This document shows, piece after piece, positions 18,448 through 60,092 of a DNA stretch of 64,000 nucleotides; positions within the stretch are counted from its first letter, which is position 1; every line of letters starts with the position of its first letter. Origin of the DNA: Squalus acanthias (taxonomy: Eukaryota); assembly GCA_030390025.1 (NCBI GenBank), contig CM059425.1, forward strand, positions 260,586,001 to 260,650,000, read 5' to 3'. The notes under the pieces are model-generated. The model was not told where the DNA came from. It made no database searches and saw nothing but the letters and a program-made list of their open reading frames with translations. The position numbers were made by a program, and so were the translations under genes.

Positions 18448-18804
18448 CAAATACTTGTAGACTTATCTCATCTTGTGTCACAAAGATCTCCCTTTCTGGA
18501 TTACTATGACTGCACTCAACGTGACAGAAGTACATATTGGTGTCGTTCACCCTCAGGTTTCTGATCCTGATGGAAGCGTTTCCACTCATCAGATGTCCAC
18601 TCAGTTCAAATCGATCATTCGCATTCGTGAGGTTCAGTTTTGTAGAATGGTTAAAGACGACCTGGCCCTTCTGCTCGTACGGGTTCCCTCTGGTCCAGAT
18701 CACAGCGATGTTCTGGGGATCTTTGGGCTCCAGGGTGAAGGAGCAGGACAACGTGACCGAACCTCCTTCAGTCTCACTCACTGACCTGCTGCTTGGATCA
18801 GCTT
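18448..18804 (-). CDS. Gene A exon: Ig V-set domain, Siglec-like, His in place of the essential Arg (YFCHVE)
   Basis: Acceptor ctctctttcAG at 18806-18805, donor GTAAGT at 18447; 357 bp, phase 1-1; VTLSC...VIW...NASIRIRNLRVNDTNMYFC V-set pattern. Confidence 0.88.
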
Positions 18805-19004
18805 CTGAAAGAGAGAATGGATGAAAGCTCAGATCCTCCCTGGACTGTATTGGAACATAAAGCATAAAGTAAGAAAGAATATGCAGTATATCATGAGAAG
18901 AAGTAAGGGCAGGAGTCGGCCATACGGCCCCTCAAGCCTGCTCCGCCATTCGATAAGATCATGGCCAATCATCGACCTCAACTCCACTTTCCCGCCCGAT
19001 CTAT

Positions 19005-19400
19005 GAGAACATATCGCGCCTTTCACAACCGCAGGACGTCCCAAAGCGCTTCACAGCCAATGAAGTACTTTGTGAAGTGTAGTCACTGTTGCAATGTAGG
19101 AAACGCGGCAGCCAATTTGTGCACAGCAAGCTCCCACAATATCACCAGATCATTTTTTTTTGGCAATGTTGGCTCAGAACACCCCAACTCTTCTTCAAAA
19201 TAGAGCCACGGGATCTTCTACATCCACCTGAGAGGGCAGACGGGGCCTCAGTTTAACGTCTCATCCAAACAACAGCCCCTCCGGTAGTGCAGCGCTCCCT
19301 CAGTACTGCACTGAGCCGAGATCTTGCACTTCCAAGTCTCTGGAGCGGGACCTGAACCCACAACCTTGTGACTGAGAGGCGAGAGAGATACCCACTGAGC
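19005..19400 (-). mobile_element. Deu-SINE (SacSINE1-like)
   Basis: Deu-domain core TGTGGGAGCTTGCTGTGCACAAATTGGCTGCCGCGTTTCC on the minus strand; tRNA-like head near 19390. Confidence 0.75.
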
Positions 19401-19771
19401 TCCAGCTTACACAATGAGAACAACTCATTCAGCTCATCGCCCCTGCTGCTTCCACAGATCAGGTACACTCTTCCCCAAGATGGACTCTAAATCAACAATC
19501 CATTGTGGAGACGCACTCCTGCACGAAAATATAAGCAATCAAAAATTGTAAATTATACAAGCTCTCATAGAATCATAGACATTTACGGCACAGAAGGAGG
19601 CCATTCGGCCCATCGTGTCCGCGCCGGCCGACAAAGAGCTATCCAGCCTCATCCCACTTTCCAGCTCTTGGTCCGTAACCCTGTAGGTTACAGCACTTCA
19701 AGTGCACATCCAAGTACTTTTTAAATGTGATGAGAGTTTCTGCCTCTACCACCCTTTCAGGCAGTGAGTTC

Positions 19772-21677
19772 CAGACCCCCACCACCCTCTGGGTGAAAAC
19801 ATTTCTCCTCAACTCCCCTCTAATCCTTCTACCAATTACTAAAAATCTATGCCCACTGGTTATTGACCTCTCTGCTAAGGGAAATAGGTCCATCCTATCC
19901 ACTCTGTCTAGGCCTCTCATAATTTTATACACCTCAATTAAATCTCCCCTCAGCCTCCTCTGTTCCAAAGAAAACAACCCCAGCCCTCTCTTTGCTTTCC
20001 TAGTTTCCTTTTTAATTTCACCTCTATTTCAACTACATAAGCAACAGAAAGATCGAATCAATATTCCTGGACTCCAAACCTGTATGTTGTGGCCTTGCGG
20101 AAAGGCTGTAACCCTTCCTCCAGTATTAGACACTGAAAGAACACTCTCCTTAACCCAATTTCAGTTTTAGACACCGGATCTACTCTGCCTCAGTCTGGGG
20201 TCTAGAAGTTTAGAATTGAAATAAAAACAGAAAATGCATTCAGCAGGTCAGGCAGCATCTGCGGAGAGAGAAACAGAGTTAACGTTTCAGGTCGATGACC
20301 TTTCATCAGCACTCAGTTTAGAATTGAAGTTCAGTTGCAGGCAAGTCCTTACCTATTACCTGTAGACTTGTTCCAAGTTTATGTTCAAACTGTTCCCCGG
20401 GCTTGTCAAGCTCCACACGGCAGAAGTAGTTATTCGTATCATTTTTCATAAGTTTTTGTATCATTATTGAAGCATCATTTTTCCTTGGGTCTCCTGTCAG
20501 TCGATAGTGATTCTCTCCAGTTTGATCAGTCACATTCTGATTTATGCAATTCTGCTGTGGGTCGACAGTTATACATTTAAAAATAGGCGGTCCATTTAAA
20601 AACTCATCTATTCTCCAGATTACTTCGATTTTCCCGTTAGAGCCAGTGTGGGGGTGCGTGAACTTGCAGGACAAGATGACAGACTCTCCTTCCCGACCGG
20701 TCACTTTCCGTGGGGCTGACATTGACCATTGACTCTGACTGCTGCCTGTGGGACAGGGATAGTATGTTAGTCTTGTACACCAAGCTCTTGTGACGCAACG
20801 GTTCAAGAAGAAGGCTCAGCACCACCATCTCAAGGGCAACTAGGGATTGGTAATAAAATGCCAGCGATGACCACATCCCGTGAATGAATACACAATTACA
20901 ATAAAGCAAATACAGAGCCACAGACATCACAATAAGACCTGACAGTCTAGACCGAACACGCTTACTTTACAAATGATAAATGACAGTCGAAAGAACTTGC
21001 ATTTATCTAGCAACTTTCACAACCTCAGGATGTCTCAAAGCGCTTTACAGCCAATGAAGTACTGTTTGAAGTGTAGTCACTGTTGCAATGTGGGAAACGC
21101 GGCAGCCAATTTGTGCACAGCAAGCTCCCACAAACAGCAATGTGATAAATGACCAGATAATCTGGGGTTTTTTTTAAGTGATGTTGGTTGAGGGATAAAT
21201 ATCAGCCGAATCACCAGGGATAACTCCCCTGCTCTTATCGAATCGTAGAATCATAGAATAATACAGGACAGAAGGAGGCCTTTTGGCCCATCATGCCTGT
21301 GCCGGCTCTTTGAAAGAGCTATCCAGTTAACGCCTTTCCCCATCGCCCTGAAAATGTTTCCCCTTCAAGTGGTTATCCAATTCCCTTTTAAAATTTATTA
21401 TTGAATCTGCTTTCAGGCAGAGCTTTCCAGATAATAACAAGTATTGCGCAAAAAATTTCTCCTCATCTCGCATCTGGCCCCTGCCACAGTACCAAAACGG
21501 CTCTTATTAAAGTCACAGATGACATCCTATGTGTCTGTGGTCATGGAAAACTATCCCTCCTCGTCCTTCTCGACTTGTCTGCAGCCTTTGACACGGTTGA
21601 CCACTCCATCCTCCTCCAATGCCTCTTCACCGTCGTCCAGCTGGGTGGGACTGCCCTTGCCTGGTTCCACCATCTAC
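19772..21677. repeat. Segmental duplicate copy B (~1.9 kb) carrying a V-set exon
   Basis: About 97-98% identical by eye to 22069-23973, offset 2296-2297. Confidence 0.95.
20353..20745 (-). CDS. Gene A exon: Siglec-15-like V-set domain, copy B, essential Arg retained (YFCRVE)
   Basis: Acceptor ctgtcccacAG, donor GTAAGG; 393 bp, phase 1-1; WSMS.P..V.G..G.SVILSCKFTHPH...GPPIFKC...C...YRLTGDPRKNDAS...YFCRVE closely follows the Siglec-15 V domain. Confidence 0.92.
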
Positions 21678-22068
21678 AAGCCACAAGTCTGGAGTGTGAT
21701 GGAATACTCTCCACTTGCCTGGATGAGTGCAGCTCCAACAACACTCAAGAAGCTCGACATCATCCAGGACAAAGCAGCCGCTTGATTGGCACCCCATCCA
21801 CCACCTTAAACATTCACTCCCTGCACCAGCGGTGCACCGTAGCTGCAGTGTGTACCATCTACAAGATGCACTGCAGCAACTTGCCAAGGCTTCTTTGGCA
21901 GCACCTCCCAAACCCGCAACCTCTTCCACCTAGAAACAGCTAAAGTGACGTCACAACCAGGGAAGGAGCTGATTGGTAAATAGGACCTGGTGAGTATTTC
22001 TACAGTCCAGTCGTTAAAGTAAAAGTAAGGTCTCTAGTTTAGAGTAAGTAGTGTTTAAAGGGAAGTTG

Positions 22069-23973
22069 CAGACCCCCACCACCCTCTGGGTGAAAACATT
22101 TCTCCTCAACTCCCCTCTAATCCTTCTACCAATTACTAAAAATCCATGCCCCCTGGTTATTGACCTCTCTGCTAAGGGAAATAGGTCCATCCTATCCACT
22201 CTGTCTAGGCCTCTCATAATTTTATACACCTCAATTAAATCTCCCCTCAGCCTCCTCTGTTCCAAAGAAAACAACCCCAGCCCTCTCTTTGCTTTCCTAG
22301 TTTCCTTTTTAATTTCACCTCTATTTCAACTACATAAGCAACAGAAAGATCGAATCAATATTCCTGGACTTCAAGCCTGTATGTTGTGGCCTTGCGGAAA
22401 GGCTGTAACACTTCCTCCAGTATTAGACACTGAAAGAACACTCTCCTTTACCCAATTTCAGTTTTAGACACCGGATCTACTCTGCCTCAGTCTGGGGTCT
22501 AGAAGTTTAGAATTGAAATAAAAACAGAAAATGCATTCAGCAGGTCAGGCAGCATCTGCAGAGAGAGAAACAGAGTTAACGTTTCAGGTCGATGACATTT
22601 CATCAGCACTTAGTTTAGAATTGAAGTTCAGTTGCAGGCAAGTCCTTACCTATTACCTGTAGACGTGTTCCACGTTTATGTTCAAACTCTTCCCCGGGCT
22701 TGTCAAGCTCCACACGGCAGAAGTAGTTATTCGTATCATTTTTCATAAGTTTTTGTATCATTATTGAAGCATCATTTTTCCTTGGGTCTCCTGTCAGTCG
22801 ATAGCGATTCTCTCCAGTTTGATCAGTCACATTCTGATTTATGCAATTCTGCTGTGGGTCGACAGTTATACATTTAAAAATAGGCGGTCCATTAAAATGC
22901 TCATCTATTCTCCAGATGACTTCGATTTTCCCGTTATAGCCTGTGTGGGGTTGCGTGAACTTGCAGGACAAGATGACAGACTCTCCTTCCCGACCGGTCA
23001 CTTTCCGTGGGACTGACATTGACCATTGACTCTGACTGCTGCCTGTGGGACAGGGATAGTATGTTAGTCTTGTACACAAAGCTCTTGTGACGCAACGGTT
23101 CAAGAAGAAGGCTCAGCACCACCATCTCAAGGGCAACTAGGGATTGGTAATAAAGTGCCAGCGATGACCACATCCCGTGAATGAATACACAATTACAATA
23201 AAGCAAATACAGAGCCACAGATATCACAATAAGACCTGACAGTCCAGACCGAACACGCTTACTTTTCAAATGATAAATGACAGTAGAAAGAACTTGCATT
23301 TATCTAGCAACTTTCACAACCTCAGGATGTCCCAAAGCGCTTTACAGCCAATGAAGTACTGTTTGAAGTGTAGTCACTGTTGCAATGTGGGAAACGCGGC
23401 AGCCAATTTGTGCACAGCAAGCTCCCACAAACAGCAATGTGATAAATGACCAGATAATCTGGGGTTTACTTAAGTGATATTGGTTGAGGGATAAATATCA
23501 GCCAAATCACCAGGGATAACTCCCCTGCTCTTGTCGAATCGTAGAATCATAGAATAATACAGGACAGAAGGAGGCCTTTTGGCCCATCGTGCCTGTGCCG
23601 GCTCTTTGAAAGAGCTATCCAGTTAACGCCTTTCCCCATAGCCCTGCAAATGTTTCCCCTTCAAGTGGTTATCCAATTCCCTTTTAAAATTTATTATTGA
23701 ATCTGCTTTCAGGCAGAGCTTTCCAGATAATAACATCTATTGCGTAAAAAATTCTCCTCATCTCGCATCTGGCCCCTGCCACAGTACCAAAATGGCTCTT
23801 ATTAAAGTCACAGATGACATCCTATGTGACTGTGGTCATGGAAAACTATCCCTCCTCGTCCTTCTCGACTTGTCTGCAGCCTTTGACACGGTTGACCACT
23901 CCATCCTCCTCCAATGCCTCTTCACCGTCTGTCCAGCTGTGTGGGACTGCCCTTGCCTGGTTCCACCATCTAC
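22069..23973. repeat. Segmental duplicate copy A (~1.9 kb) carrying a V-set exon
   Basis: Same order as copy B: CR1 3' piece, Penelope-like tail, V exon, Deu-SINE piece, CR1 tail, L2 piece. Confidence 0.95.
22650..23042 (-). CDS. Gene A exon: Siglec-15-like V-set domain, copy A, essential Arg retained (YFCRVE)
   Basis: Acceptor AG at 23044-23043, donor GTAAGG at 22649; 393 bp, phase 1-1; open frame; joins the leader as ...SMLN-S-SSQSQWSMSVP. Confidence 0.92.
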
Positions 23974-24620
23974 CTCACTGCCACTTCTCTCGACCCCTCC
24001 ACTGTCTCTAAATTGTCAAACTGCTTGTCCGACATCCAGTGCTGGAGGAGCAGAAATTTTCTCCAACTAAGTATTGGGAAAAATGAAGCCATTGTTTTCG
24101 GTCCCAGTCACAAACGCCATTCCCTAGGAACCGACTCCATCCCTCTGACTGGCAACTGTCTGAGGCTGAACCAGACTGTTCGCAAACTTGGTGTCATATT
24201 TGACCTCGAAATGAGCTTCCAACCACATTTCCGTGTCATCACTAAGACCGCCTATTTCCACCTCTGGAACACCACTAAGTTACCTAATTACAAATTTAAT
24301 TAAATTTAATTGAATAAAACAAGGTCATATAGGGATGGCAGTGCAGGTGGTGTGCTGCAACTGCAGCATGTGGGAGTTTGTGGAGAGCATTGTGATCCCG
24401 GACAACCACGTTTGCAGTAAGTGTCTGCATCTTGAGGAACTTCAGCTCAGAGTTGTTGAGCTGGAGTCTGAGGTGCAGATATTGCAGGGCATCAGGGATG
24501 GGGAGAGTTACCTGGACACTTTGATGCAGGAGGCAGTCACACCCCTTAGGTTATGTAGTGGTACAGGTCTGGTTAGTGGTCAGGGACAGGAGGATGTGAC
24601 TGCAACTCAGGCAGGTAAGG

Positions 24621-44230: not shown

Positions 44231-44282
44231 TGTTCAGCATGGACACAGTCAGTAAAAGAAGGTGAATGAGAGAATGCGGCAT
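44231..44282 (-). CDS. Gene A first coding exon: signal peptide MPHSLIHLLLLTVSMLN
   Basis: ATG in CAAACATGC context, hydrophobic core, consensus donor A|GTGAGT, phase 1 matching the V exons; lies in non-repeat DNA. Confidence 0.75.
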
Positions 44283-44530
44283 GTTTGCTTGTTGAGAGCC
44301 CAATTCCTTCTCAGAATTCTCCAGTTACTGTTGGTGAAGAGGAAGCTTCAAGTTATTTAAGGCTCACGTCGGAGTGACATCGCACATTTCACTATCTCAG
44401 CCATCGCACTGAAAATACGTAACAGGAAGCACCGATTAAATAGAGGTTTCATTCTTCAGAAGGTAACGTTAAACGAACAGTCCATTAAGAATCAATTTGA
44501 AACATGGGGACTATTTAATGAGCGAATATT
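44283..44530 (-). promoter_or_regulatory. Candidate gene A promoter: TATA-like TTAAATAA (44360-44353), ETS/PU.1-like AAGAGGAAGC (44337) and CAGGAAGC (44423)
   Basis: Motifs in unique DNA just upstream of the leader exon; function inferred only. Confidence 0.4.
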
Positions 44531-44534
44531 GTGT

Positions 44535-44990
44535 TAGCCGTGTCTCAGTTGTTGGACTCTGGCCTCTGAGTTAGAAGGTGAGTTCAAGACCCACTCCAGA
44601 GACTTGAGCACTAAATCCAGGCTGACACTCCCAGTGCGGTGCTGAGGGAGTGCTGCACTGTCAGAGGTGCCATGGTTTGGATGAGACGTTAAACCGACGC
44701 CCCGTCTGCTCTCTCAGGTGGACGTAAAAGATCCCACGCCACTATTTCGAAGAAGAGTAGCGGAGTTATCCCCGGTACCCTGGCCAATATTTAACCCACA
44801 ATCAACATCACTAAAAAACAAATTATCTCCTTATTTATCACATTGCTGTTTGTGGGAGCTTGCTGTGCGTAAATTGGCTTCCGCGTTTCTTTCATTACAA
44901 CAGTGATTACACTTCAAAAAGTACTTAATTGGCTGTAAATCACTTTGGGACGTCTCGAGCTGGTGAAAAGCGCCATATAAATGCAAATTG
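44535..44990 (+). mobile_element. Full-length Deu-SINE (SacSINE1-like)
   Basis: tRNA-like head, GGGAGTGCTGCACTGTCAGAGG, Deu domain, AAATGCAA end. Confidence 0.8.
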
Positions 44991-45626
44991 TCTGCCGCGT
45001 TGCCTGGAGCTGGTCAGTAATGCTGCCTGCAATCCTGTGACTTGTTCTCAATCACATTCACTATGTAGCACAAGATCCTATTTGCCCTTATTTACTGCTG
45101 TTGCCCACCACGCAGACACTGAGCTGACAGGGGAGGGAGCAATATCTGCCCTGGCAGGACACAAGCCTATCCCGTGGAGGCTGGGACATTAAATACATTT
45201 AAGGTGGAGATAGACAGATTTTTGCAAGATAAGGGAGTGAAGGGTTGTGGGGAGCGGGCGGGGAAGTGGCTTTGAGCCCAAGTTCAGCCATGATCTTATT
45301 GAATGGCGGAGCAGGCTCGAGGGGCCAAGTGGCCTATTCCTGCTCCTATTTCTTATGTTCTTATTAGCTTCAGAGCTGCTATGGGTTAACCGCTTACGTG
45401 GAGCTGCTCACTTGTGCTTGGTGTCTGCGTTGGCGGGGACTTGGTGGGTGAAATCAAACGTGCTGAAAGGGACTTCCTCATCTGAAGCTGGCTGGTTTGC
45501 CTTGTCAAATATCACAAGTATTTTTATTTTCTTCGTTAACTCGAAATTTAAGAAGGAAGTAACATGAAAATAGCGAGGAACCGTCACGGTTCCACAGAGT
45601 CAGTGGTCGGCCGTCAGAGAGATCTC

Positions 45627-48600
45627 ATAAGAACATAAGAAGTAAGAGCAGGAGTGGGCCATACGGCCCCTCGAGCCTGCTCCGCCATTCAATAAGATAA
45701 TGGCTGATCATCGACCTCAACTCCACTTTCCCACCCGATCTCCATATCCCTTGATTCCCCTAGAGTCCAAAAATCTATCTATCTCAGCCTTAAATATACT
45801 CAAAGACTCAGCATCCACAGCCCTCTGGGGTAGAGAATTCCAAAGATTCACAACCCTCTGAGTGAAGAAATTCCTCCTCATCTCAGTCTTAAATGGCCGA
45901 CCCCTTATCCTGAGACTATGGCCCCTAGTTCTAGACACTCCAGCCAGGGGAAACAACCTCTCAGCATCTACCCTGTCAATCCCCTTCAGAATCTTGTATG
46001 TTTCAATGAGATCACCTCTCATTCTTCTAAACTCCAGAGAGTATAGGCCCATTCTACTCAACCTCTCATCATAGGACAGCCCTCTCATCCCAGGAATCAA
46101 TCTAGTGAACCTTTGTTGCACCGCCTCCAAGGCAAGTATAACCTTCCTTAGATAAGGAGACCAAAACTGTGCACCGTACTCCAGTTGTGGTCTCTCCAAG
46201 CCCCTGTACAATTGTAGCAAGACTTCCTTACTCTTATACTCCAACCCCCTTGCAATAAAGACCAACATGCCATTTGCCTTCCTTATTGCTTGCTGTACCT
46301 GCATGCTAGTTTTCTGTGTTTCTTGCGCAAGGACACCCAAATCTCTCTGAACACCAACATTAGAAATTTTCTCACCATTTAAAAAATATTCTGTTTTTCT
46401 ATTCTTCCTACCAAAGTGAATAACCTCACATTTCCCCACATTATACTCCATCTGCCACCTTACTGCCCACTCACTTAGTCTATCTATATCCCTTTGCAGA
46501 CTCTTTGTGTTCTCCTCACCGCTTACTGTCCCACCTAGCTTTGTATCATCAGCAAACTTGGATATATTACACTCGGTCCCTTCATCTAGGGCATTAATAT
46601 AGATTGTAAATAGCTGAGGCCCCAACACTGATCCTTGCGGCACCCCACTAGTTACAGCCTGCCAACCTGAAAAAGATTTGTTTATCCCTACTCTCTGTTT
46701 TCTGTTTGTTAACCAATCCTCTATAAGAACATAAGAACATAAGAAATAGGAGCAGGAATAGGCCACTTGGCCCCTCGAGCCTGCTCCGCCATTCAATAAG
46801 ATCATGGCTGATCTTGGGCTCAAAGCCACTCCCCTGCCCGCTCCCCATAACCCTTCACTCCCTTATCTTGCAAAAATCTGTCTATCTCCACCTTAAATGC
46901 ATTTAATGATCCAGCCTCCACAGCTCTCTGGGACAGAGAATTCCACAGATTTACGACCCTCTGAGAGAAGAAATTCCTCCTCATCTCAGTTCTAAAAGGG
47001 CGACCCTTTATTCTGAAACTATGCCCCTGAGTTCTAGATTTCCCCACGAGGAGAAACATCCTCTCTGCATCTACCTTGTCGAGCCCCCTTAGTATCTTAT
47101 ATGTTTCAATAAGATCACTTCTCATTCTTCTAAATTCCAATGAGTATAGGCCCAACCTGCTCAACCTTTCTTCATAAATCAACCCGCTCATCTCAGGAGT
47201 CAACCTAGTGAATCGTCTCTGAACTGCCTCCAATGCAAGTATATCCTTCCTTAAATAAGGAGACCAAAACTGTACGCAGTACTCAAGGTGTGGTCTCACC
47301 AACGCCCTGTACAGTTGTAGCAGGACTTCCCTGCTTTTATACTCCAACCCCCTTGCAATAAAGGCCAACATTCCATTTGCCTTTTTGATTACTTGCTGTA
47401 CCTGCATGCTAACTTTTTGTGTTTCATGCACAAGGACCCCCAGGTCCCTCTGAATTGTAGCATTTTGTAATCTCTCTACATTTAAATAATTTGATTTTTT
47501 ATTTTTCCTGCCAAAGTGGATAACCTCGCACTTTCCCACATTATACTCCATCTGCCAAATGTTTGCCCATTCACTTAGCCTGTCTATATCCCTTTGCAGG
47601 TTCTTTGAGTCCTCTGCACAACTTGCTTTCCCACCCATTTTTGTATCATCCGCAAACTTGGCTACATTACACTCAGTCCCTTCATCCAAGTCATTAATGT
47701 AGATTGTAAATAGTTGAGGCCCCAGCACCGATCCCTGTGGCACCCCACTAGTTACCATTTGCCAACCGGAAAATGACCCATTTATCCCGACTCTCTGCTT
47801 TCTGTTAGTTAGCCAATTCTCTATCCATGCTACTATATTACCCCCAACCCCATGAGCCCTAATCTTGTGTAATAACCTTTTATGTGGCACCTTATCAAAT
47901 GCCTTTTGGAAAACCAAATGTAAGACATCCACTGGTTCCCCTTTATCTACCCTGGTAGTTACATCCTCAAAAAACTCTAATAAATTAGTCAAACATGATT
48001 TCCCTTTCATAAAACCATGTTGACTCTGCCTAATCATGTTATGATTTTCTAAGTGACTTGATACCACTTCCTTAACAATGGATTCCCCCATTTTCCCGAC
48101 AACTGATGTCAGGCTAACTGGCCTGTAGTTCCCTGTTTTTTCTCTCCCTTCTTTCTTGAATAGCGGTGTTACATTTGCGACCTTCCAATCCACTGGGACC
48201 ATTTCAGAAACTAGGGAAATTTGGAAGATCAAAACCAATGCATCCATTATCTCTTCAGCCACCTCTTTGAGAACCCTAGGATGTAGGCCGTCAGGTCCCG
48301 GGGATTTGTCGGCTTTTAGTCCCATTAGTTTCTCTAGTACTTTTTCTCTACTTATGTTAATTACGTTAAGTTCCTCACCCTCATTAGACCCTTGGTTCCC
48401 CGCCATTTTTGGTATGCTTTTTGTGTCTTCTACTGTGAAGACAGAAACAAAATATTTTTTCACATTTCTGCCATTTCCTTATTCCCCATAATAATTTATC
48501 CTGTCTCAGCCTCTAAGGGACCAACGTTTACTTTGGCTACTCCTTTCCTTTTTACATACTTGTAGAAACTCTTGCAATCTGCTTTTATATTTCTTGCTAG

Positions 48601-49440
48601 TTTTCTTTCATATTCTATTTTTTCCCTTTTTATCAATTTTTTGGTCAACCTTTGCTGGTTTCTGAAACTCTCCCAATCCTCAGGATTTCTATTATTCTTT
48701 GCAACATTATAAGATTCTTCTTTCAATCTAATGCTGTCGTGAACTTATTTTTTTCAGCCACGGTTGGAACACTTTTCCCGTGGAATTTTTGTTTCTCAAT
48801 GGAATGTATTTTTGTTGAGAATTATGAAATATTTCTTTAAATGCTAGCCACTGCTTATCTACCGCCATACCTTTTAATCTATTTTTCCAATCTGCCTTAG
48901 CCAACTCGCCCCTCATACCTATGTAATTGGATTTACTTAAGTTTAAGACTCTAGTTTCGGACTTAGGACAAGTCACTCTCAAAATTAATGCGCCGTATTT
49001 TCCGATGCCTACGGGTGTGTACGCGCTGTGTACAAACCCGTAGGGACATCAGAAATGACGGATTCAGGCAAGCGAAGTGCATGTGCTGAAAACCGGTATT
49101 TCCGATCTGTCAAGAATGATCTTTTAAAATACTTTAAAAAAAGTTAAGTTTATTTTTAGCCATGTAAAAAACTTTAATTATTTTTTTTTTAATTTCATTT
49201 TTGTTTAAAATATTAAATTTATTGTAATTTCAACTCATTTAAAAAATGTGATGTTTTTTTAAAATGTATTTAATGTTTTACTGTATTTTTGGGGTGATCT
49301 CCATTCATAGAATTTCACATTGGCCTGTCAAATATATCGTATTGTGATCACTCTGTCCCAGAGGATCCTTTACTATGAGATTGCTAATTAAACCTGTCTC
49401 ATTGCACAATACAATATCTGAAATAGCCTGTTCCCTGGTC
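45627..49440 (-). mobile_element. Composite of CR1 copies (45627-46723; 46724-48985; 49320-49440) with a small MITE-like insert at ~48985-49320
   Basis: RT ORFs 45717-46829 and 46820-48463; two CR1 tails at 45627 and 46724. Confidence 0.88.
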
Positions 49441-49461
49441 ACCACTGAAGGAGTGAAGAGA

Positions 49462-49510
49462 ATGCTGTGGATTGTCTTTTGTGCACTCGCCCTGGCCATC
49501 TCGGCAGAAC
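49462..49510 (+). CDS. Gene B first coding exon: signal peptide MLWIVFCALALAISAE
   Basis: ATG in AGAATGC, strongly hydrophobic, donor C|GTACGT, phase 1 matching the V exon at 54756. Confidence 0.75.
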
Positions 49511-50064
49511 GTACGTATTCCCCAAGAGGAGGCAGGAACCCATTTTCTTAACGTTAAACCGTTTTAGTAAAATAATTAACTGCGTAGGAAAGAACTGGAC
49601 CTCACTGGAAACTGAGAAGGATCAGTTCTTTGGTACTATACTGAAGTCTCGAACCAAGTGAGGCCCCTGCCACGGATAAAAACCTTTATATTTATGCATA
49701 CGCGTGTTGTTACGTTTGTGTGTGTGATCTAATTATCTTTGTAAATTAGAAGATTTTGCGATACAGTATATGAGCAACTTGAGACAAGATGTAGAATCAC
49801 GTTGAGTGGAGCTAAGAAACAGCAAAGGGCAGGAAACACTGGTGAGAGGAGTTTATAGGCCCCCCAACAGTAGATGTAGAGTCGGGCACAGTATAAATCA
49901 GGAAATTAGAGGTACATGTAACAAAGGTAATACAGTAATCATGGGAGAATTTAATTTTCATATAGACTGGGCAAAGCAAATTTGCAGTAATAGTGCGGAA
50001 GATGAGTTCATGGAATGCATTCAAGATAGTTTGAGATCAGTGTGTCGAGGCACCAACTAGGGAC

Positions 50065-52700
50065 CAACAACAGCTTGTATTTATATAGCGCCTTTAACAT
50101 AGTAAAAAGTCCCAAAGCGCTTCACAGAAGTATTATGGACAAAAATTTGACACCGAGCCACATAAGGAGAAATTAGGGCAGATGAGCAAAAGCTTAGTCA
50201 AAGAGGTAGGTTTTAAGGGGCGTCTTAAAGGAGAAAAGAGAGGTAGACAGGCGGAGAGATTTAGACAGGGAATTCCAGATCTTAGAGCCTAGGCAACAAG
50301 AAGGCACGGCCACCAAAGGTTGAGCGATTATAATCAGAGATGCTCAAGAGGCCAGAATTAGAGGAGCGCAGATATCTCGGGGGGTTGTGGGGCTGGGGGA
50401 AATTACAGAGATAGGGAGGGGCGAGGGCATGGCGGGATTTGAAAACAAGGATGAGAATTTTGAAATCGCGGTGTTGCTTAACCGGGAGCTAATGTAGGTC
50501 AGCGAGCACAGGGGTAATGGGTGAACAGAACTCCATGCGAGTTAGGTCACGGGCAGCCAAGATTTGGCTGATCTCAAGTTTACGTAGGGTAGAATGTGGG
50601 AGGCCAGCCAGGAGTGCGTTGGAATAGTCAGTCTAGAGGTAACAAAGGCATGGATGAGGGTTTCAGCAGCGGATGAGCTGAGGCAGGGGCGGAGACGGGT
50701 GATGTTACGTAGGTGGAAATAGGCGGTCTTAATTATTCCACAGATATGTGTTCGGAAGCTCATTTCAGGGTCAAAAAGCCAACCCTGAGGAGAGAGAACC
50801 GTTAACAATGTCAGCTAACATGCTCATTTCTGCCCCAGACAGATGTTAGGGAGAGGGATGGAGTCAGTGGCTAGGGAATGGAGTTGGTGGCGGGGACCGA
50901 AAACAATGGCTTCGGTCTTCCCAATATTCAAGTGGAGAAAATTTCTACTCATCCAGAACTGTATGTCCGACAAGCAGTCTGACAATTTAGAGATGGTGGA
51001 GGGGTCGAGAGAAGTGGTGGAGAGGTAGAGCTGGGTGTCGTCAGCGTACATGTGGAAACTGACGCCGTGTTTTCGGATTATGTAGCCAAGGGGCAACATG
51101 TAGTTGAGAAATAGGAGGGGGCCAAGGATAGATCCTTGGGGGACACCAGAGGTAACGATGCGGGAGTGGGAAGAGAAGCTATTGCAGGTGATTCTCTGGC
51201 TATGATTAGATAGATAAGAATGGAAACAGGCGACAACACATTCAAGGACTTTGGAGAAGAAAGGGAGTTTGGAGATGGGGCGCTAGTTTGCAAGGACAGA
51301 GGGATCAATGGTTGTTTTTTTGAGGAGAGGGGTGATGATGGCAGATTTGAGGGAGGGGCACAGTACCTGAGGAGAGAGAACCGTTAACAATGTCAGCTAA
51401 CATGGGAGCCAGAAAAGGAAGTTGGGTGGTCAGCAGTTTGGTCGGAATAGGGTCGAGGGAGCAGGAGGTGGGTCTCCTGGACTAGATGAGCGTGGAGAGG
51501 TCATGAGGGGAGATCGGACAGAAACTGGAAAAAGATGCGGGTTTAGGGCTAGGGCAGGGGGGAACCTTCGAGAAAGTGCCCGGTGGGCATGGGGAAGGAA
51601 GGGAAGTGGCAGAGGCAGCTAATCAGATTGGTTCAATCTTAGAGACAAAGAAGTCCATGAGCTCCTCTCTTGTAAGAGTATTAGAAGAGAGTTTTTTCCA
51701 GATGCGGTCACAGAAGGAAGTAGGGTTGGTAGGGGGAAGGGGGATGTGGGTGGAGAGCGATATGAGGAAGTGGTCAGAGATGGCCTTATCTGCGATTGAC
51801 ACATTGGGAGTAGCGAGGCCACGAGAGATGGCAAGGTCGAGGGGGTGGCCGTGAATATGGGTTGGGGACTTTACATGGAGGAAGAGATTAAGGGAGGATA
51901 GGAGGCTAGTGAATTCGGAGGACAGAGAGAATGATGAGATGAGATGGAGGTTGAAATTACCGAGGATGAGAAGTCGATCGGTGCAGATGCTGAGGGAGGA
52001 GAACAGTGAAGATATCTCGGTAATAAAATTTTAATGGTACTTGGGTAGGCGGTAGAGAATGGGAATTTTAAATGAGAGGTGAGAGGGGAGGAATAAGGTG
52101 AGATGCTCAAAGGAGGAGAAAGTGCCGGAGGAGTAGGGGGCAGACCAAAGTGTGATTTGGTGATGAGAGCCACACCGCCACCATGCCAGTCTGAGCGGGG
52201 CAAGTGGTGGGAGGTATAGCCAGGCGGGGAGGCTTCATTTAAGGGTAAGGTGTCATCACCCCTCAACCAAGTTTCCGTCAGGGCCATGATGTCAATGCAT
52301 GATAAGCTCATGGATGGCAAGGGCCTTGTTCACAAGTGAACGGACATTCTGGAAGGAGATGCGGAGAGGGTTGGTGATGGCTGACCCACTGCCAGTGTCC
52401 ACAGGGTCAGCGCTGGGAGGGGCGAGTTGGACGGGGAGGAGATTGGCAACATTAGCACCCAGTGGACGCGCTGGGCGGGAATGTCGGTGAGAGAGTATGA
52501 TGGGGCAGTTGGGGTTGTTGCTCGTGAGGGGGCAGCGACGAGTGCCACGGTGGGCCTTTTGGAGGATGCCAAGAGAGGCACAGAGCTGTAGGCTTATCTA
52601 AGAGGGAGTCAAGCCTGGAACAGTGGCAGGAGAGTAGGAAGGTCGAAGAGTAATGAAGGATTGGGATGGTGTTTGGGTGAGCAGTGTATCCGAGAGAGAA
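50065..52700 (-). mobile_element. Decayed L2-like LINE (APE plus RT) with internal deletions
   Basis: IDIMALTETWL, YADDTQLY, HLNIGKTEAI, AETLIHAFVTSRL. Confidence 0.85.
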
Positions 52701-54460: not shown

Positions 54461-54755
54461 AACAATCCAGTAGTTTCATGGTCACCATTACTGATACTAG
54501 CTTTTTATTCCAGATTTATATAATTAACTGAATTTAAATTCCCCAGCTGCCTATGAAGGGTTTTGAGAGAGTGAATAGGAAGGAAATGTTTTACTGTGTT
54601 AAAGTCGCTGTTTAAATGTAAGCTGCTGTTGTCTGCCTGCACTGCCGTCAGAGCAAACCTCACAGTGCACAGGGGACATATATGTTGTATAAACTGTGTT
54701 TAATGCTCTGTGCTAATGAATAATGTCCATTCTTTAAAACCCTTCTCTACCTCAG

Positions 54756-55124
54756 CTGATAAGAACAATACCCGGACAGTGACTGGGATGAAGGGAGATT
54801 CTGCCACACTGCCCTGCACCTTCAGTCCCCCTGGCCGGTATCCGAGCTCCATCACTGTCCTCTGGATGAAGGAGAATCCATGCCAAGAGTCCACTGTTTT
54901 TAATCACATTTGTTCCCTCGCCACTGGTTCTCACTATACTGACACAGTTAGTGTAAATCAAGGAGATCGATATGAGCTGATCGGAAACACAACCCAAGGA
55001 GACGCCTCCATAAGGATGAGGGACCTGGGGCTGAACGACACCAGCGACTACTTCTGTCACGTGCACATCGAGAATGGGCAAGGGGAAAACGTGACTCAGG
55101 ATGTGATGAGACTACAGGTTGTTG
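54756..55124 (+). CDS. Gene B exon: Ig V-set domain, Siglec-like, His at the Arg position (YFCHVH)
   Basis: Acceptor ttctctacctcAG, donor G|GTAAGG; 369 bp, phase 1-1; ATLPCTF...VLW...DASIRMRDLGLNDTSDYFC. Confidence 0.88.
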
Positions 55125-56016
55125 GTAAGGAAACATCTACGTCAATGATATGGTGAAGGTGATAAAATCACGTTGAACAAACACAAGAGCAAATTCGCTC
55201 CCAGTGAGGAGCTGAGACCTGAGAGACGCCTGTAACAGTTTTGGAGGGCATTTAGGCAGCCCAATTTCCAGGCCGCTGTGTTGTTCAGATCCACTCACTC
55301 AGGCTAATTCCATCCGCCTCCTCCGTTAACATCAAACTCATGTCCCTTTACAATCAGAAGCCAGTCCACTTGCTCTCTGAATATTTCAATCCAGTCTCCT
55401 GTTGGGTGTCACCTCTCCATGCTCACGTGTTTCTCTCTGCCACGTAATGGAGGTTGTCACCACGGACCGTTTAATAAAGACTAATTAGATTGAGTTAACT
55501 CATTGGGCTAAAAATTCAGTTGGTTGCGCCTCCCGTTAGCGCCTTAAGAGGGCGCTAATGGGGCGCAAAGCAGCTAGAGCCCGGGCGCAGCGATGTTTGC
55601 GCCGCTCGCGAACTTCACTAGACATTTTGCGGTGGCGCTAAACTTTATCGCCGCGGTCCCCTGCGCCCGCGGATTGTGACGTCATACGAGAGTGCAACGC
55701 CCTTGTGGCGCCCCGGAGCAGAAATTCAGTGGCGCCCCCATCCTTACCGCCTGGCGCATCCAACGACCGGTAGAGTGGAACGCTAACAATCGCTGTGGGG
55801 CTCGGGGGGGGCGCTATTTAAAGGGGGCCTCTTCCTGTCTTTCTCTGTGGTTGACATTTTTGCACCACTCGTTCTGAGAGAGAGAGAGAGATTCGGAGAG
55901 AGAGAGAGAGAGACTTGTACATTGAGTCAACGCTGTGTGAGGTAGTTTTGGCTACTGATCCTAACTTCGCTGGTACTTTGGTTTCTGGCCTTCATAACTT
56001 TGCTTGCTAAGAGACT

Positions 56017-57047
56017 ATGGGGGCTGCACTGATGGGGGGCGTCGTCCTGCGCCAGCTGAATCGGAGGAGACGGAGACACAGAGAGAGAGTGGCAATGATG
56101 GCCAGACGGAGGAGGGCCAACAGGCATCTGTACAGGAGAGCTTACCCTCCCAGGGTATATCGTGAACAGCTCTCCGACATTCATATGTCTGATGACCAGT
56201 GTCTGCGAAGGCTGCGCTTCAGCAAGGAGGTGGTCACTGAGCTCTGCCACCTGCTGCAGCCAGATCTGCAGCCTCAACTGAGGTCCAGGACGTCTCTGTC
56301 GGTGGCAGTGAAGGTCACAGTGGCTCTGAACTTTTATGCTACTGGCTCATTTCAATCTGCTGCTGGGGACATCGCCAATCTCTCCCAGTTGGCGGTGCAT
56401 TGCTGCATCCGGCAGGTCACAAATGCCCTCTTTAAAAGGAGACGAGAGTTCATCTCTTTCCCCATGACCCCAGACAAGCAGCAAGAACGCGCTCTGGGCT
56501 TTGCGAGGATAGCGGGCTTCCCCATGGTGCAGGGCGCCATTGACTGCACGCATGTGGCTTTGCGTGCTCCGCATGAGAATGCCAAGGATTTCCGGAACAG
56601 AAAGTGGTTCCATTCCTTGAATGTTCAGTTGGTCTGTGACCACAGACAGCTGATACTCGCTGTCAATGCCCACTATCCTGGCAGCTGCCACGATGCTTTC
56701 ATCCTGCGCCAGACTACTGTGGCAGAACTTTTCGAGGCACCGCATCAGCCAGTTGGTTGGCTTCTCGGGGACAAGGGGTATCCACTGAGCACCTGGCTGA
56801 TGACACCGCTCCGTACGCCCAACACCCCTGCTGAGCTGCGGTACAACGAGAGCCATCAAGCTACCAGGAACATCGTGGAGCACACAATCGGCGTGCTCAA
56901 GCAACAGTTCCGCTGTCTCGACCATTCTGGAGGAGCCCTGCAGTACTCGCCTGAGCGAGTTTCCAACCTCGTAGTTGTGTGCTGCATGCTGCATAACATG
57001 GCAATCCTCAGGACCCAGCCAATGCCACCAGGCCTTGGAGCACCACC

Positions 57048-57078
<31 letters not shown>

Positions 57079-57177
57079 GAGGAGGATGATCAGCAGCAGC
57101 ACCAAGGCGTGAGGGCGGCCCACAATGGTGAAACTGCAAGGGCCGTCCGTCAGCGGCTGATAGCAAGCCGCTTCTAG
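56017..57177 (+). CDS. Harbinger DDE transposase (HARBI1-like), 386 aa
   Basis: GAIDCTH, HDAFIL, LLGDKGY, NIVEHTIGVLK, CMLHN motifs; acidic C-terminus; single open ORF. Confidence 0.93.
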
Positions 57178-57488
57178 GCCCCTGCTGTGGAAATGGCTTC
57201 TGCCATTGAGAACAGCATGAATGAACCCAACACGCAACCCCTAAGCCGGCCAAGGCACCAATGATTCCAAACACCAAACATGTATATTTTGAGTACCAAA
57301 ACTTATTTATTTTACAAACTCTGTGTGTGTCATTTCTTCATGACAAACTCATACAAATAAACACAAAAAAACAGTCATTACCATAACTGGTTCTCACAAC
57401 CTGGAGATCATGTGCAAAACACTCAACAAAAGTTTGACCACGAACCTCGGCCTTTAATAAAAAAATGACCAGCATTTTGTCACACCTC

Positions 57489-59224
57489 CTACATCGAGGG
57501 TGAACTCCTTCCCGTGCGCCCTTCCCCCCTTCTTACCCTACTGCTCCTCCGCAATGGGACCTCAGTGGCTGCAGCAAGGCTGGTGGAAGGCTGCTGACTG
57601 TCGGGCCCTGACAATGCAGATGCCCTTGAGGGACGGCCTCGACCAGTTCTGGGCCTGGAGGGCCCGGCTGCAGACTGCACCAACTCTGCATGGGCGGCAG
57701 CAGTCTGTCCTACAGGCGGTGGCAACTGCAGTGGAGAAGTGACAGTGGTGGCAGCAGGAATGCTGTCATCTTGAGCGAGGACAGCAACTCCCTGCTCGAC
57801 CGGCACACTGGCGCTCCCACGGGGCAGCACCTCAGCATCCGGAGCAATCTGCTGGAGCACAGATTGCTGGCCTGCTGCGGCGCGGTGAGAGCCCCGGGGA
57901 AATGTGTCCGAACCAGCGAGGATGGCAGCAGACAGTGCTCGCGTGGCCTCAATCTGAGTCTGCATGAGAGCAGTCTGAGATTGAATTGCAGCACTGAGCT
58001 TCAGTGTCGCATCCGCCTGCGCTGCAGCGAAGTGCTCCACACTCCTTGCCAGTGTTTCAATGCATTCGGGCACCCTACCCACTGCAGCCATGAGCTCAGT
58101 GTGCATGGCCACCGCCTGGGTGTTCATTTCCGCGATCAGCCGCTCCTCCTCTGCGTCCAGTGCAGCAGGACCCGCTGGCCTACTCGCCCTCCGGGGAGAA
58201 GGCCCCAGTGCTTCCCTACCCCCATGGCGTTGCTGCAGCCCGCTGGGTCCTGGAGCTTCACCCTCATCAGACCCTTCCCCCCTGCTCCCCTCCAGGGAAG
58301 GCGTGTCCTCAGTGTCGGCATGGGCTTCCTCGGGAGAGGGTGGCTCTGATGCACCGGCTTCCTCTTCCTCCTCGGCTGCAGCCTCACTCCCACTGGCAGC
58401 TTCAGGGCCCGTCTCCTCAGCTGGTGAATCACCATCTGAAAGCAGGGAGGTACAAGAGTGGCTTTAGCGTGAGGACAGGGTGGCAGTAAGGGAGGAATAA
58501 GTGCAGCGAGTTAGTAAGTTGGATTGAAAGTGTCAAAGGCTGGTGTTGTGAGGGACAAGTGGAAGGACAAAGGACAAAAAGGTGATGACCTTACCATTGC
58601 TGTCCAGAAAGGGGTCGGCGTCTCCAGTGGCGACGGGACCGATCACCTGGCTTGCCACAATCCTGTGGACGCGCTCCTCAAGATCGCTGAGGGGTTGCAG
58701 CTGAGGCGGCCCTCCACCCGTCCATTGCTGCTGTCTCCTATTATGCGCCAGCTTGGCCTGCAAGAAAAAGGACGGCGTCTGAGTAAATATACAGCCATGG
58801 TCTTGCCTGATGTGCCTCCCATAGGTGAATAGCCCTTACTGTATGCAAAGTGTGGAATGTGTGTGTGTGCTTCATGAAAGGGCCATAGGTGTTGGATGAG
58901 TGCTGTTAATTGTGGTTTTAAGACCCTCTGGCCATAGAGTGAGGCTGAGATGGAGGGATGGAGAGGTATTGCAAAAAAGCCACTCACCCTGACGACCCAA
59001 GTGAGGTCGTTGAACTTTTTCCGGCATAGGACATGGGTCCTGGGCACCATGCTCCTGGAGGAGACGTGCTGAGCCACCTCCCTCCACAACCTTCTGTAGT
59101 CGCGCGGCAAAGGCCTCCTGCCACTCTCTGGGTACAGTGTTGATCCTCGGCGCTCCACCGCGCCAACCAGAGCATCCAAGGCCCGCCCGCTGAAGCGCTG
59201 AGCTCGTTCTCTCGCCCTCTCCAT
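57489..59224 (-). CDS. Harbinger Myb/SANT-like DNA-binding partner, 3 exons (59224-58988, 58757-58595, 58435-57489), ~448 aa
   Basis: RFS...LV..V...LY...LWREVA...CRKKFNDL trihelix motif, TGGG motif; GT-AG junctions (phases 0, 1) give a continuous open frame. Confidence 0.85.
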
Positions 59225-59601
59225 CCTTGGCTGGAAAATGGAAGCTCAGGTCTCTCCAGGTCGAGATTCAAGGCTGCAATGAGCAGGGTGTGGCTGGGGA
59301 GCAAGATCGCCCCCCCTTTAAGAACTGGCCGGCGCCAGTGTGTCTGTGTTCCCTCGCTAACTGGCAGCACCTGCGCTGCGCTCGCGCTCTGAGTTAGCGC
59401 CTCACTCCTCGGCCGTTGCGCCTTAAGACAGGTGTGCAGCGCCTGATTTAGCGCTCCAATCACCTCCCGGGGCGTTAAAAGTGAAGTTTCCAGTCAGTGG
59501 CGATAATTAGCGCCAGGCGCTAATCTTTGCGCCCGGACAATAATTGCGCCCCAAATGGGGCGATACTGAATTTTTCCCCCATTGTCTCTTTCCTCCCCAA
59601 G

Positions 59602-59976
59602 CCCCAGCCACCATCCTGGAGCTGTCGGTTGTGACCGATAATACAACTGGAGACACCATCGTGTGCAAGGTTGAAGGGGAGCCACTCGCAAACATCACAT
59701 GGATCGACCCTGAAAACAGCGCACTGCCCGTGGACAGCAATAGCACGACAGTCACACGAGTGCCGGACAAACATCAAACTGTGGGAGAGAATCTGAACCC
59801 AATGCTGAGAGGGGACTACAGCTGTGTGGCTGTAAATGAACACGGGAGTGACATCCGTCAGATCCACTTCCCCGCTGATGACAAGGACAAGTTGAACATC
59901 GACCTCTACATTCGAATCTCCATTTCAATTATCTTCTTTCTTTTAAGTGGGTTTACTATCTGGAGGTTGAAGAGAG
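59602..59976 (+). CDS. Gene B exon: C2-type Ig domain plus transmembrane helix containing Arg
   Basis: Acceptor ctctttcctccccaAG, donor G|GTAAGG; 375 bp, phase 1-1; IVCKVEGEPLANITW...GDYSCVAVNEHG then LYIRISISIIFFLLSGFTIWRLKR. Confidence 0.88.
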
Positions 59977-60066
59977 GTAAGGTTCACAATAGAATCTCTA
60001 CTGGTGTGGGACATCATGGTAATACTGGGGCCTCTTCACAGATAGTTACACGGGGAATATTTTCAG

Positions 60067-60092
60067 CTGTCGGTTCTGATGATGCGGAACAG
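60067..60092 (+). CDS. Gene B candidate cytoplasmic micro-exon (AVGSDDAEQ)
   Basis: tattttcAG acceptor and CAG|GTAAAG donor, phase 1-0, 90-bp intron after the TM exon. Confidence 0.5.

Follow-up and report, generated by a model that had tools for sequence, protein, structure and literature searches.

Two divergently oriented Siglec-15-related receptor genes in Squalus acanthias, probable members of a multigene family of cartilaginous fishes

Within a 64,000-nucleotide stretch of the Squalus acanthias genome (assembly GCA_030390025.1, contig CM059425.1, positions 260,586,001 to 260,650,000; hereafter the window), we find two sets of immunoglobulin (Ig) exons on opposite strands, which we read, with somewhat better than even confidence, as two genes transcribed away from each other that belong to a Siglec-15-related multigene family and have the roles proposed below. 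The family would consist of type I Ig receptors present throughout cartilaginous fishes. In sharks, rays and chimaera these typically appear to comprise a leader, at least one N-terminal Siglec-15-type V domain, a conserved second V domain with a histidine at the arginine site, one C2 domain and a transmembrane (TM) segment. Gene A, on the minus strand, would carry two recently duplicated Arg-type V exons followed by a His-type V exon, with its signalling end encoded outside the window, and would most likely be a tandem-V receptor capable of binding sialic acid. Gene B, on the plus strand, would be an orthologue-grade relative of the neutral-TM genes of Heptranchias and Heterodontus that has lost its N-terminal Arg-type V exon and has an arginine in the membrane segment; if expressed, it would most likely act as a lectin-less V(His)-C2 receptor signalling via an ITAM adaptor.

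The window sequence is free of N, and all five Ig exons (Table 1) are of phase 1-1 with AG/GT borders. Against the Pfam V-set profile (PF07686, curated cut-off 26 bits) the four V exons score 56.6 (V1), 50.3 (V2), 66.2 (V3) and 58.0 (VB) bits, with E values between 3e-13 and 3e-18 (3.4e-15 for V1, 3.4e-18 for V3), and the C2 exon reaches 27.4 bits (E = 3.5e-6) against the I-set profile (PF07679, cut-off 23.7 bits). The residue following the F-strand cysteine is Arg in V1 and V2 and His in V3 and VB; gene A thus holds the arginine expected of a sialic-acid binder, and gene B does not. The order V(Arg)-V(Arg)-V(His), proposed for gene A in an earlier sequence-only reading, is real. So is the order V(His)-C2-TM(Arg) proposed for gene B, with the refinement that C2 and TM share one exon; up to its first donor this exon spans 59602-59976, and position 60092, previously taken as its end, marks the second possible donor.

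Table 1. Features of the two genes and of the surrounding repeats (window coordinates)
Feature	Position	Strand	Remarks
Gene A candidate leader (signal-peptide) exon	44231..44282	-	MPHSLIHLLLLTVSMLN + 1 nt; 17 codons + 1 nt; phase-1 donor gtgagt
Gene A V1 exon	22650..23042	-	Siglec-15-type V-set, YFCRVE Arg; contigs of X1, X2, X5
Gene A V2 exon	20353..20745	-	tandem duplicate of V1, Arg kept; X3 record 19 covers 20353-20595
Gene A V3 exon	18448..18804	-	second-type V-set, FCHVE His; contigs of X1, X2, X3, X5
23-bp satellite array	1..16248	.	708 copies, 90% matches; downstream of gene A V3
LINE-derived sequence filling most of the leader-leader spacer	45614..49439	-	reverse-transcriptase ORFs at 45720-48478
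Gene B leader exon	49462..49510	+	MLWIVFCALALAISAE + 1 nt; 16 codons + 1 nt; phase-1 donor gtacgt
Gene B V(His) exon, VB	54756..55124	+	V-set, YFCHVH; closest solved structure Siglec-15
Transposon ORFs in gene B V-to-C2 intron	56011-57174; 57492-58463	+; -	from ORF list; the first transposase-like
Gene B C2 + TM(Arg) exon	59602..60101	+	donors after 59976 (phase 1) and 60092 (phase 0); read-through stop 60099-60101

Each Ig series is preceded by a leader-like exon with a phase-1 donor. The Ig exons are phase-compatible with it, and the two leaders point apart, with their ATGs 5.2 kb from each other on opposite strands, as previously described. A scan for an ATG, a hydrophobic core and a phase-1 donor returned only these two candidates, at 44282 (-) and 49462 (+), from the upstream spaces searched. 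Over the 96 kb that the two strands contribute outside the satellite, it yielded nine candidates at seven loci, among which these two alone have a 7/9 donor match. The gene B leader is matched by residues 1-17 of the Heptranchias protein P0010 over 49462-49512 with 71% identity (tblastn). The gene A leader, the sole candidate on the minus strand of 23043-46000, is a plausible assignment from the sequence, separated from V1 by a 21-kb intron filled with transposable elements.

Transcript-like contigs bear on gene A. Record 19 of run X3 covers 18448-18804 and 20353-20595 and joins 20353 directly to 18804 at adjoining record positions 712/713, so that the V2-to-V3 splice matches the predicted borders exactly. 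The runs had been labelled 'RNA?' as a guess, and we infer that they are RNA because this joint lacks the intron; on that basis gene A is probably transcribed and spliced. Furthermore, contigs of X1, X2, X3 and X5 stop exactly at 18448, and those of X1, X2 and X5 at 18448 or 22650, before continuing elsewhere; beyond V3 the contig goes on for 355 nt, which lie outside 17250-18447. A V1-to-V2 joint is absent from the contigs of the runs examined. Their records also contain no leader-to-V1 joint, since those that extend upstream of V1 (X1 record 8, by 135 nt, and X2 record 16, by 27 nt) run into the intron. V1 and V2 are identical at 381 of 393 nt (97%), and 10 of their 12 exon differences alter the protein. 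The membrane and tail exons of gene A lie outside the window, in which tblastn with Heptranchias P0010 finds no match to a gene A C2/TM exon; lying downstream of V3, the satellite array falls within the next intron of gene A or beyond the part of the gene that the window holds.

The Siglec-15-like character that the sequence-only reading assigned to both genes is borne out by structure and sequence comparisons. Among solved structures, human Siglec-15 (7zoz) is the top match of V1 and V2, at E = 2.8e-25 for V1 with the next match at 3.8e-8, and is also the top match of VB (1.6e-12), the histidine of which aligns with the human arginine. V3 is not specially Siglec-15-like, with Siglec-15 (E = 1e-4) last among the 60 matches listed. 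The 7ZOZ structure paper describes a C64-C142 disulfide, an extra C95-C104 disulfide, a salt bridge from R143 to sialic acid and a charged TM segment. V1 and V2 retain all four cysteines and the arginine, their YFCRVE Arg aligning with R143 (FCR of 7zoz), while of the extra cysteine pair only the first aligns in VB and neither in the VB orthologues. The C2 exon matches the C2 of coelacanth Siglec-15 at E = 7e-23 and that of lungfish at 1.7e-16. Human Siglec-15 was considered as a match to this exon and is absent at E ≤ 0.1; the homology is carried only via coelacanth, lungfish, bowfin and turtle proteins.

A phmmer search of the whole library gave 263 matches at E ≤ 1e-3, many of them with two to seven V stretches. 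Relatives occur in Heptranchias, Heterodontus, Cetorhinus, Mustelus, Pristis, Leucoraja, Rhinoraja and Callorhinchus and further in lungfish, gar, bowfin, coelacanth and turtle, under the source names Siglec-15, Siglec-12, CXADR-like or uncharacterized. Because the family occurs in chimaera, sharks and rays, with multi-V relatives in lungfish, lamprey and amphibians, and thus spans Chondrichthyes and beyond, the suggestion that the window holds a lineage-specific cluster is unsupported. For a phylogeny of the individual domains, as the earlier reading had called for, 342 domains were reduced by a 3-mer redundancy filter to 228 and then to 87 rows, taken from named proteins together with the four exons of the window. 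The resulting trees place V1 and V2 in a clade of Siglec-15-type N-terminal V domains (38 rows, SH-aLRT 92) and V3 and VB in a second-V clade (26 rows, SH-aLRT 91). Judged from the latter, in which 15 of 19 rows have His at the Arg site, the His V is the family's conserved second V domain and not a decayed lectin domain, contrary to the idea that the V of gene B is the disabled lectin domain of a paralogue.

The domains of gene A are only 33-46% identical to any fetched protein, and the whole-library search found no close orthologue (identity ≤ 48%). A search seeded with the open frame that contains V1 (165 aa) found no homologous protein among proteins of 91-289 aa, a size range so restricted that this null result says little. 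The proposal that gene A represents a separate third lineage was not adopted: V1 and V2 form their own branch in the trees, but joining them with the N-terminal V of family 1, that of gene B, costs an lnL difference of only 0.34 and is not rejected by the AU test (p = 0.5). The V order of gene A is matched by Callorhinchus milii LOC103188797 (P0155), a protein in which three Arg-type V domains precede V(His), C2 and TM.

The exons of gene B are 64-77% identical to those of Heptranchias perlo XP_067838218 ('Siglec-12 isoform X3', P0010), P0163 and P0171. Specifically, VB is 77% identical to Cetorhinus P0163 and 69-72% to P0010, and the C2-TM part is 64% identical to P0010 (tblastn), 76% to Heterodontus P0171 and 80-81% to P0192 and P0191. 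The C-termini of the family would be of three kinds, namely a Lys TM with almost no tail, in the style of Siglec-15 and DAP12, a neutral TM followed by a long tail with Tyr motifs, in the inhibitory style, and an Arg TM with a short tail. A TM Lys is present in 15 of the 39 relatives listed, and 10 of the 17 tails examined have ITIM-consensus matches outside the TM. The TM stretch of gene B, LYIRISISIIFFLLSGFTIW, contains an arginine where P0010 has Gly and P0171 (Heterodontus francisci 'CXADR-like') has Trp, and this residue aligns with an Arg in P0182 and P0183. Unlike P0010 and P0171, gene B is without the first V. An Arg-type V exon is present in all of its full-length orthologues, and tblastn of P0010 on the window at E ≤ 1 finds none in gene B. 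A relaxed search for a relic in intron 1 gave a weak match with two stops at 51076-51246 (+), which is antisense to a LINE reverse-transcriptase ORF (50827-51282) and was rejected as chance.

This exon loss, together with LINE homology that extends to 22 nt before the ATG and transposon ORFs in the second intron, raises the question of whether gene B is a decaying copy, in other words a member of family 1 from which transposons removed the lectin-type V and the proximal promoter and whose exons look intact only because the loss is recent. A relaxed tblastn using seven C-terminal fragments from related proteins, which found nothing credible as a tail or Lys-TM exon in 60100-64000, would fit such a history. 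We nonetheless consider decay rather unlikely: the reading frame is open throughout the three exons, their splice sites are canonical, their phases agree and the Ig signature residues are intact, a TM-Arg relative with a short tail exists in Rhinoraja (P0182), its Arg aligned with that of gene B, and an AATAAA at 60828-60833, downstream of the C2 + TM exon, would fit a terminal exon.

Gene B could also be an ordinary member of the inhibitory class, with Tyr-motif tail exons past the window end and a TM Arg that is a snorkelling edge residue instead of a docking site for an adaptor, a reading that we consider doubtful. In its favour, the donor G|GTAAGG at 59977 sits exactly at the point where the tail of P0171 and P0010 begins after LKR/LKK, so that ITIM exons beyond the window are conceivable; a second donor follows 60092, the introns here range from 4.5 to 21 kb with only 3.9 kb of the window left after the exon, and the Arg is the fourth residue of the hydrophobic stretch. 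However, the read-through tail, 41 aa long with no Tyr, is similar both to the short tail of the TM-Arg protein P0182 and to the juxtamembrane segment of Callorhinchus P0155, which suggests that it is coding, and 60100-64000 contains no tail-like exon. We favour, if gene B is expressed, the lectin-less receptor outlined at the outset.

The earlier reading proposed that A and B form one co-regulated paired unit, made up of a multi-V sialic-acid sensor and a non-binding activating partner; in its full form the two would share a bidirectional promoter. The head-to-head leaders agree with it, as does gene B, with its TM Arg and without an Arg-type V, and true paired members do exist in the family: Heptranchias P0192 and P0010 are identical at 198 of 207 positions (95.7%) over V(His) + C2 and have opposite C-termini, in keeping with near-identical ectodomains joined to opposite signalling ends, which is how PMC6288428 defines paired Siglecs. 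A and B do not form a matched pair by that definition, since the comparable domains V3 and VB are only 39% identical (V1 and VB 33%), well short of the near-identity by which pairs are recognised. Moreover, the TM and tail of gene A lie outside the window, and the stretch 44283-49600, within which the spacer lies, is 78% repetitive, 4137 of its 5318 nt recurring elsewhere in the window. The unique DNA adjoining the two ATGs amounts to only 245 nt at gene A and 22 nt at gene B. A shared, co-regulated unit is accordingly very unlikely, and we retain the reading of two divergent members of one family.

More tentatively, and with somewhat less than even confidence, we propose that cartilaginous fishes made the single Siglec-15 modular, with a variable number of lectin V domains on a fixed V(His)-C2 stalk, three interchangeable ends and near-identical true pairs. 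Gene A would be a fast-evolving tandem-lectin member, and gene B an offshoot of the inhibitory branch, with an Arg TM and its lectin domain shed, that may serve as a ligand-blind or protein-binding activating counterpart. Siglec-15 is pursued as a drug target both in bone disease and in oncology, and its TM Lys recruits DAP12/DAP10. If the lectin V was indeed multiplied, the His V fixed and the ends (Lys-TM, Arg-TM, ITIM) swapped between near-identical ectodomains, then the paired-receptor logic of the CD33-related Siglecs would also have arisen on the Siglec-15 branch, and the family would offer naturally occurring variants with which to study the roles of the stalk domains and of the TM charge. 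PMC6288428 and PMC9630641 count Siglec-15 among the small number of conserved Siglecs. Since public annotation already includes these genes, though named inconsistently, what is added is a coherent reading of a family and not a new kind of molecule; searches of a literature library found no paper on this cartilaginous-fish family. A whale-shark paper reportedly lists Siglec gene families in its supplementary file 9, which may bear on novelty.

Compared with known systems, the shark genes are closest to Siglec-15, with which V1 and V2 share the B-F disulfide, the Arg after the F-strand Cys and the extra Cys pair; a single C2 homologous to that of coelacanth and lungfish precedes the TM, and many shark relatives have a TM Lys and almost no tail. 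They differ in carrying an additional, conserved second V with His at the Arg site, in the tandemly repeated N-terminal V of gene A, which brings it to three V exons, and in gene B, which is without an Arg-type V and has Arg rather than Lys, in another TM class. The V + C2 ectodomain of Siglec-15 is thus not matched, the V of gene B being of the second type and full-length shark relatives combining two V types with C2, and the family is multi-copy as opposed to the single conserved gene of humans. The near-identical ectodomains and opposite signalling ends of Heptranchias P0192/P0010 recall Siglec-5/14 and Siglec-11/16, from which A and B differ by falling below the definition of a pair at 39% identity and the shark family as a whole by descending from the Siglec-15 branch and not from the CD33-related Siglecs. 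Finally, the modular domain immune-type receptors (MDIR) of skate are likewise multi-V Ig receptors with charged-TM and ITIM forms, whose CD300/TREM-like affinity would set them apart from the Siglec-15 affinity found here.

The exons and domain order that the sequence-only reading assigned to genes A and B are real (see table), and their designation as Siglec-15-like was likewise right. In a window free of Ns and rich in LINE fragments outside its satellite, Pfam detects a V-set domain in all four V exons (E 3e-13 to 3e-18) and an I-set domain in the gene B C2+TM exon (E 3.5e-6); the residue next to the F-strand Cys is Arg in V1 and V2 and His in V3 and VB, and an Arg lies inside the hydrophobic stretch LYIRISISIIFFLLSGFTIW of gene B. 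All homology searches of the gene models were run exon by exon, and among all solved structures V1 retrieves human Siglec-15 (7zoz) at E 2.8e-25, with the runner-up at 3.8e-8. According to an excerpt of PMC10264397, human Siglec-15 carries the disulfides C64-C142 and C95-C104, and its R143 on strand F forms a salt bridge with sialic acid; aligned to 7zoz, V1 keeps all four Cys as well as the Arg, and so does V2. Siglec-15 is also the best structural match of VB (E 1.6e-12), where a His stands opposite the Siglec-15 Arg, and V3 on its own reads as a generic V domain among solved structures, with Siglec-15 last among the 60 matches listed (E 1e-4). The gene B C2 exon does not reach human Siglec-15 among solved structures; it matches the C2 of Siglec-15-named proteins from coelacanth (35%, E 7e-23), lungfish (E 1.7e-16), bowfin (2.9e-10) and turtle (3e-6). 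Within the VB exon (54860-54925) there are two extra Cys, in NPC and HIC, which are absent at those places from every fetched orthologue and may either bond to each other as a new disulfide or stay unpaired.

Features of genes A and B and the flanking satellite in the window
Feature	Position	Strand	Description
Satellite	1-16248		23-bp unit, 708 copies, 90% matches; strong G/T skew; first quarter of the window
Gene A V3	18804-18448	minus	V-set; AG/GT borders, phase 1-1
Gene A V2	20745-20353	minus	V-set; AG/GT borders, phase 1-1
Gene A V1	23042-22650	minus	V-set; AG/GT borders, phase 1-1
Gene A leader-like exon	ATG 44282 to 44231	minus	17 codons + 1 base, donor gtgagt
Gene B leader exon	ATG 49462 to 49510	plus	16 codons + 1 base, donor gtacgt
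Gene B VB	54756-55124	plus	V-set; AG/GT borders, phase 1-1
Gene B C2+TM exon	starts 59602	plus	I-set; AG/GT borders, phase 1-1
Gene B possible end 1	after 59976	plus	donor G/GTAAGG
Gene B possible end 2	after 60092	plus	second donor
Gene B possible end 3	60099-60101	plus	stop on read-through

The head-to-head disposition claimed for the two leaders is real on the gene B side and plausible on the gene A side. A scan for an ATG, 12-32 codons, a phase-1 donor matching at least 6/9 of the consensus and a hydrophobic 9-mer returned 9 candidates at 7 loci in the non-satellite DNA of the two strands, 96 kb in all, and 7/9 donors occur only in the candidates at 44282 and 49462. Upstream of V1, 44282 is the sole candidate over 23 kb, as is 49462 over 10.5 kb upstream of VB. 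The gene B leader (49462-49512) is 71% identical to residues 1-17 of the Heptranchias perlo protein P0010 (XP_067838218); homology of this kind does not extend to the gene A leader, which is a good candidate only.

VB is 77% identical to its Cetorhinus relative P0163 and 72% to P0010, and the gene B C2-TM sequence is 76% identical to Heterodontus P0171, its C2 part reaching 80-81% with the annotated relatives P0192 and P0191. Standard and relaxed tblastn found no Arg-type V exon, present in all full-length relatives, between 49512 and 54743. The gene B TM belongs by sequence to the neutral-TM class, the site of its Arg being Gly in P0010 and Trp in P0171, and the Arg of the Rhinoraja P0182 TM aligns with it. 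The charged TM residue of human Siglec-15 is Lys; an Arg close to the outer TM edge may favour FcR-gamma-type adaptors. Downstream of the C2+TM exon, which has three possible ends, an AATAAA lies at 60828-60833, and the read-through peptide has no Tyr and resembles the P0182 tail and, in Callorhinchus P0155, the juxtamembrane part. The 3.9 kb that the window still offers after the C2+TM exon yielded no tail exon; tail exons beyond the window are possible because introns here reach 21 kb, and gene B may be an ordinary inhibitory member that is incompletely visible in the window. It may also be a decaying copy: a minus-strand LINE fragment (49335-49439) stops 22 nt short of the gene B ATG, so that either the proximal upstream DNA is transposon-derived or a further upstream exon exists, and the V-to-C2 intron harbours, within 56011-58463, a transposase-like ORF of 388 aa (plus) and an ORF of 324 aa (minus). 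The missing Arg-type V, the TM Arg, the alternative ends, the adjoining LINE and the intronic transposon ORFs together admit three readings, of which we favour, though not strongly, the prediction that gene B encodes an Arg-TM, lectin-less receptor.

In gene A, V1 and V2 sit in a tandem duplication (19767-23974) with a period of 2297 bp and 97.5% overall identity, the exons being identical at 381/393 positions and the flanks at 1485/1520. Where the exons differ, 10 of the 12 changes alter the encoded protein, and two hit the residue aligned with human Siglec-15 Y87, a ligand contact according to PMC10264397. Four read runs, X1 and X2 from organism A and X3 and X5 from organism B, whose RNA nature is a guess, were compared with 17250-23240: low-depth contigs cover the V exons, and only short, very deep repeat pieces cover the introns. 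In X3 record 19 (960 nt), 18448-18804 and then 20353-20595 occupy adjoining record positions, so that V2 is spliced to V3 precisely where predicted, the run being presumed RNA; this joint rests on the record placement and is not among the 15 rows listed, of 80, in a separate tabulation. The same record continues for 355 letters past V3 that have no match in 17250-18447, contigs of X1, X2 and X5 likewise depart from the genome exactly at 18448, and X2 record 16 departs at 22650. No V1-to-V2 joint was seen in the four runs; contigs over V2 come from X3 alone, and those over V1 solely from X1, X2 and X5. Two contigs read on past the upstream border of V1 into the adjoining intron. The transcript-like X2 record 16 (22650-23069) and V1 disagree at 19 of 420 places, four of V2 type and the rest unique, which points to another copy, an allele or a sister species in organism A. 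The search of flanking sequence for the membrane end of gene A gave no C2 or TM exon within the window. With the satellite downstream of V3, the next intron would cross it and the next exon must lie beyond it, unless the gene is interrupted there.

A phmmer search with V1 against 1.84 billion representatives gave 263 matches at E<=1e-3, of which 118 also pass E<=1e-10. Multi-V proteins are common among them, with up to seven V stretches in a lungfish protein of 1128 aa, and the matches bear the automatic names Siglec-15, Siglec-12, CXADR-like or uncharacterized. They come from sharks, rays and chimaera (Heptranchias, Heterodontus, Cetorhinus, Mustelus, Chiloscyllium, Rhincodon, Pristis, Leucoraja, Rhinoraja, Mobula, Narcine, Callorhinchus) and from lungfish, gar, bowfin, coelacanth, turtle, newt, caecilians and lampreys, a spread that contradicts the proposed lineage specificity. 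Our literature search turned up no publication about a Siglec-15 family in sharks; the relevant part of the whale-shark genome paper merely lists Siglecs among gnathostome Ig families, and a passage of PMC9630641 describes Siglec-15 as ancient and conserved. The cartilaginous-fish sequences follow a plan of leader, Siglec-15-type N-terminal V, second V with YFCHV, C2 and TM, and in Callorhinchus P0155 the His V follows on three N-terminal V domains, the same order as in gene A. Their C-termini are of three kinds: a Lys TM with nearly no tail (15 of the 39 listed proteins); a neutral TM with a long tail, where an ITIM consensus outside the TM occurs in 10 of 17 tails examined; and an Arg TM with a short tail, seen in P0182 and P0183 of Rhinoraja and in the first half of P0003. 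This last protein, an 874-aa model from Mobula birostris, runs from its Arg-TM unit directly into another complete unit, whose TM is neutral and whose tail has Tyr motifs, and reads like a fusion of two adjacent genes. In a second subfamily an Arg-type V is joined to a V with YLCLVE, followed by TM and tail; it is devoid of C2 and in Heptranchias shares a contig with the C2-bearing one.

Two domain trees agree, one from FastTree (228 domains) and a quick one from IQ-TREE (87 domains from named proteins together with the four window exons). V1 and V2 belong to a clade of V domains of the N-terminal Siglec-15 type (38 rows, SH-aLRT 92), in which Siglec-15 of bony vertebrates is represented along with the two cartilaginous-fish subfamilies. 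V3 and VB fall in a second-V clade (26 rows, SH-aLRT 91), VB among sharks, in which the Arg site is His in 15/19 rows of the C2-bearing subfamily. V1/V2 and V3 each form their own branch in both trees, and several placements of gene A are possible, because an AU test does not reject joining V1/V2 with the C2-bearing subfamily (p 0.5).

The proposal that A and B are paired receptors is not backed by their domains: VB shares 39% identity with V3 and 33% with V1, values that mark the two genes as old paralogues rather than a matched pair. A compact promoter common to both is unlikely, as 4137 of the 5318 nt in 44283-49600 recur elsewhere in the window, and the reading of the two genes as paired, co-regulated and lineage-specific, taken as one, is not borne out. 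The family as a whole, as judged from its predicted proteins, shows paired-receptor traits nonetheless. On one Heptranchias perlo contig, P0192 and P0010 are identical at 198 of 207 V(His)+C2 positions (95.7%) and unrelated afterwards, P0192 having a Lys TM without a tail and P0010 a neutral TM with a tail of ITIM/ITSM-type Tyr motifs. By sequence, these two proteins give the Siglec-15 branch a textbook paired-receptor signature, which fits the definition of such receptors in PMC6288428.
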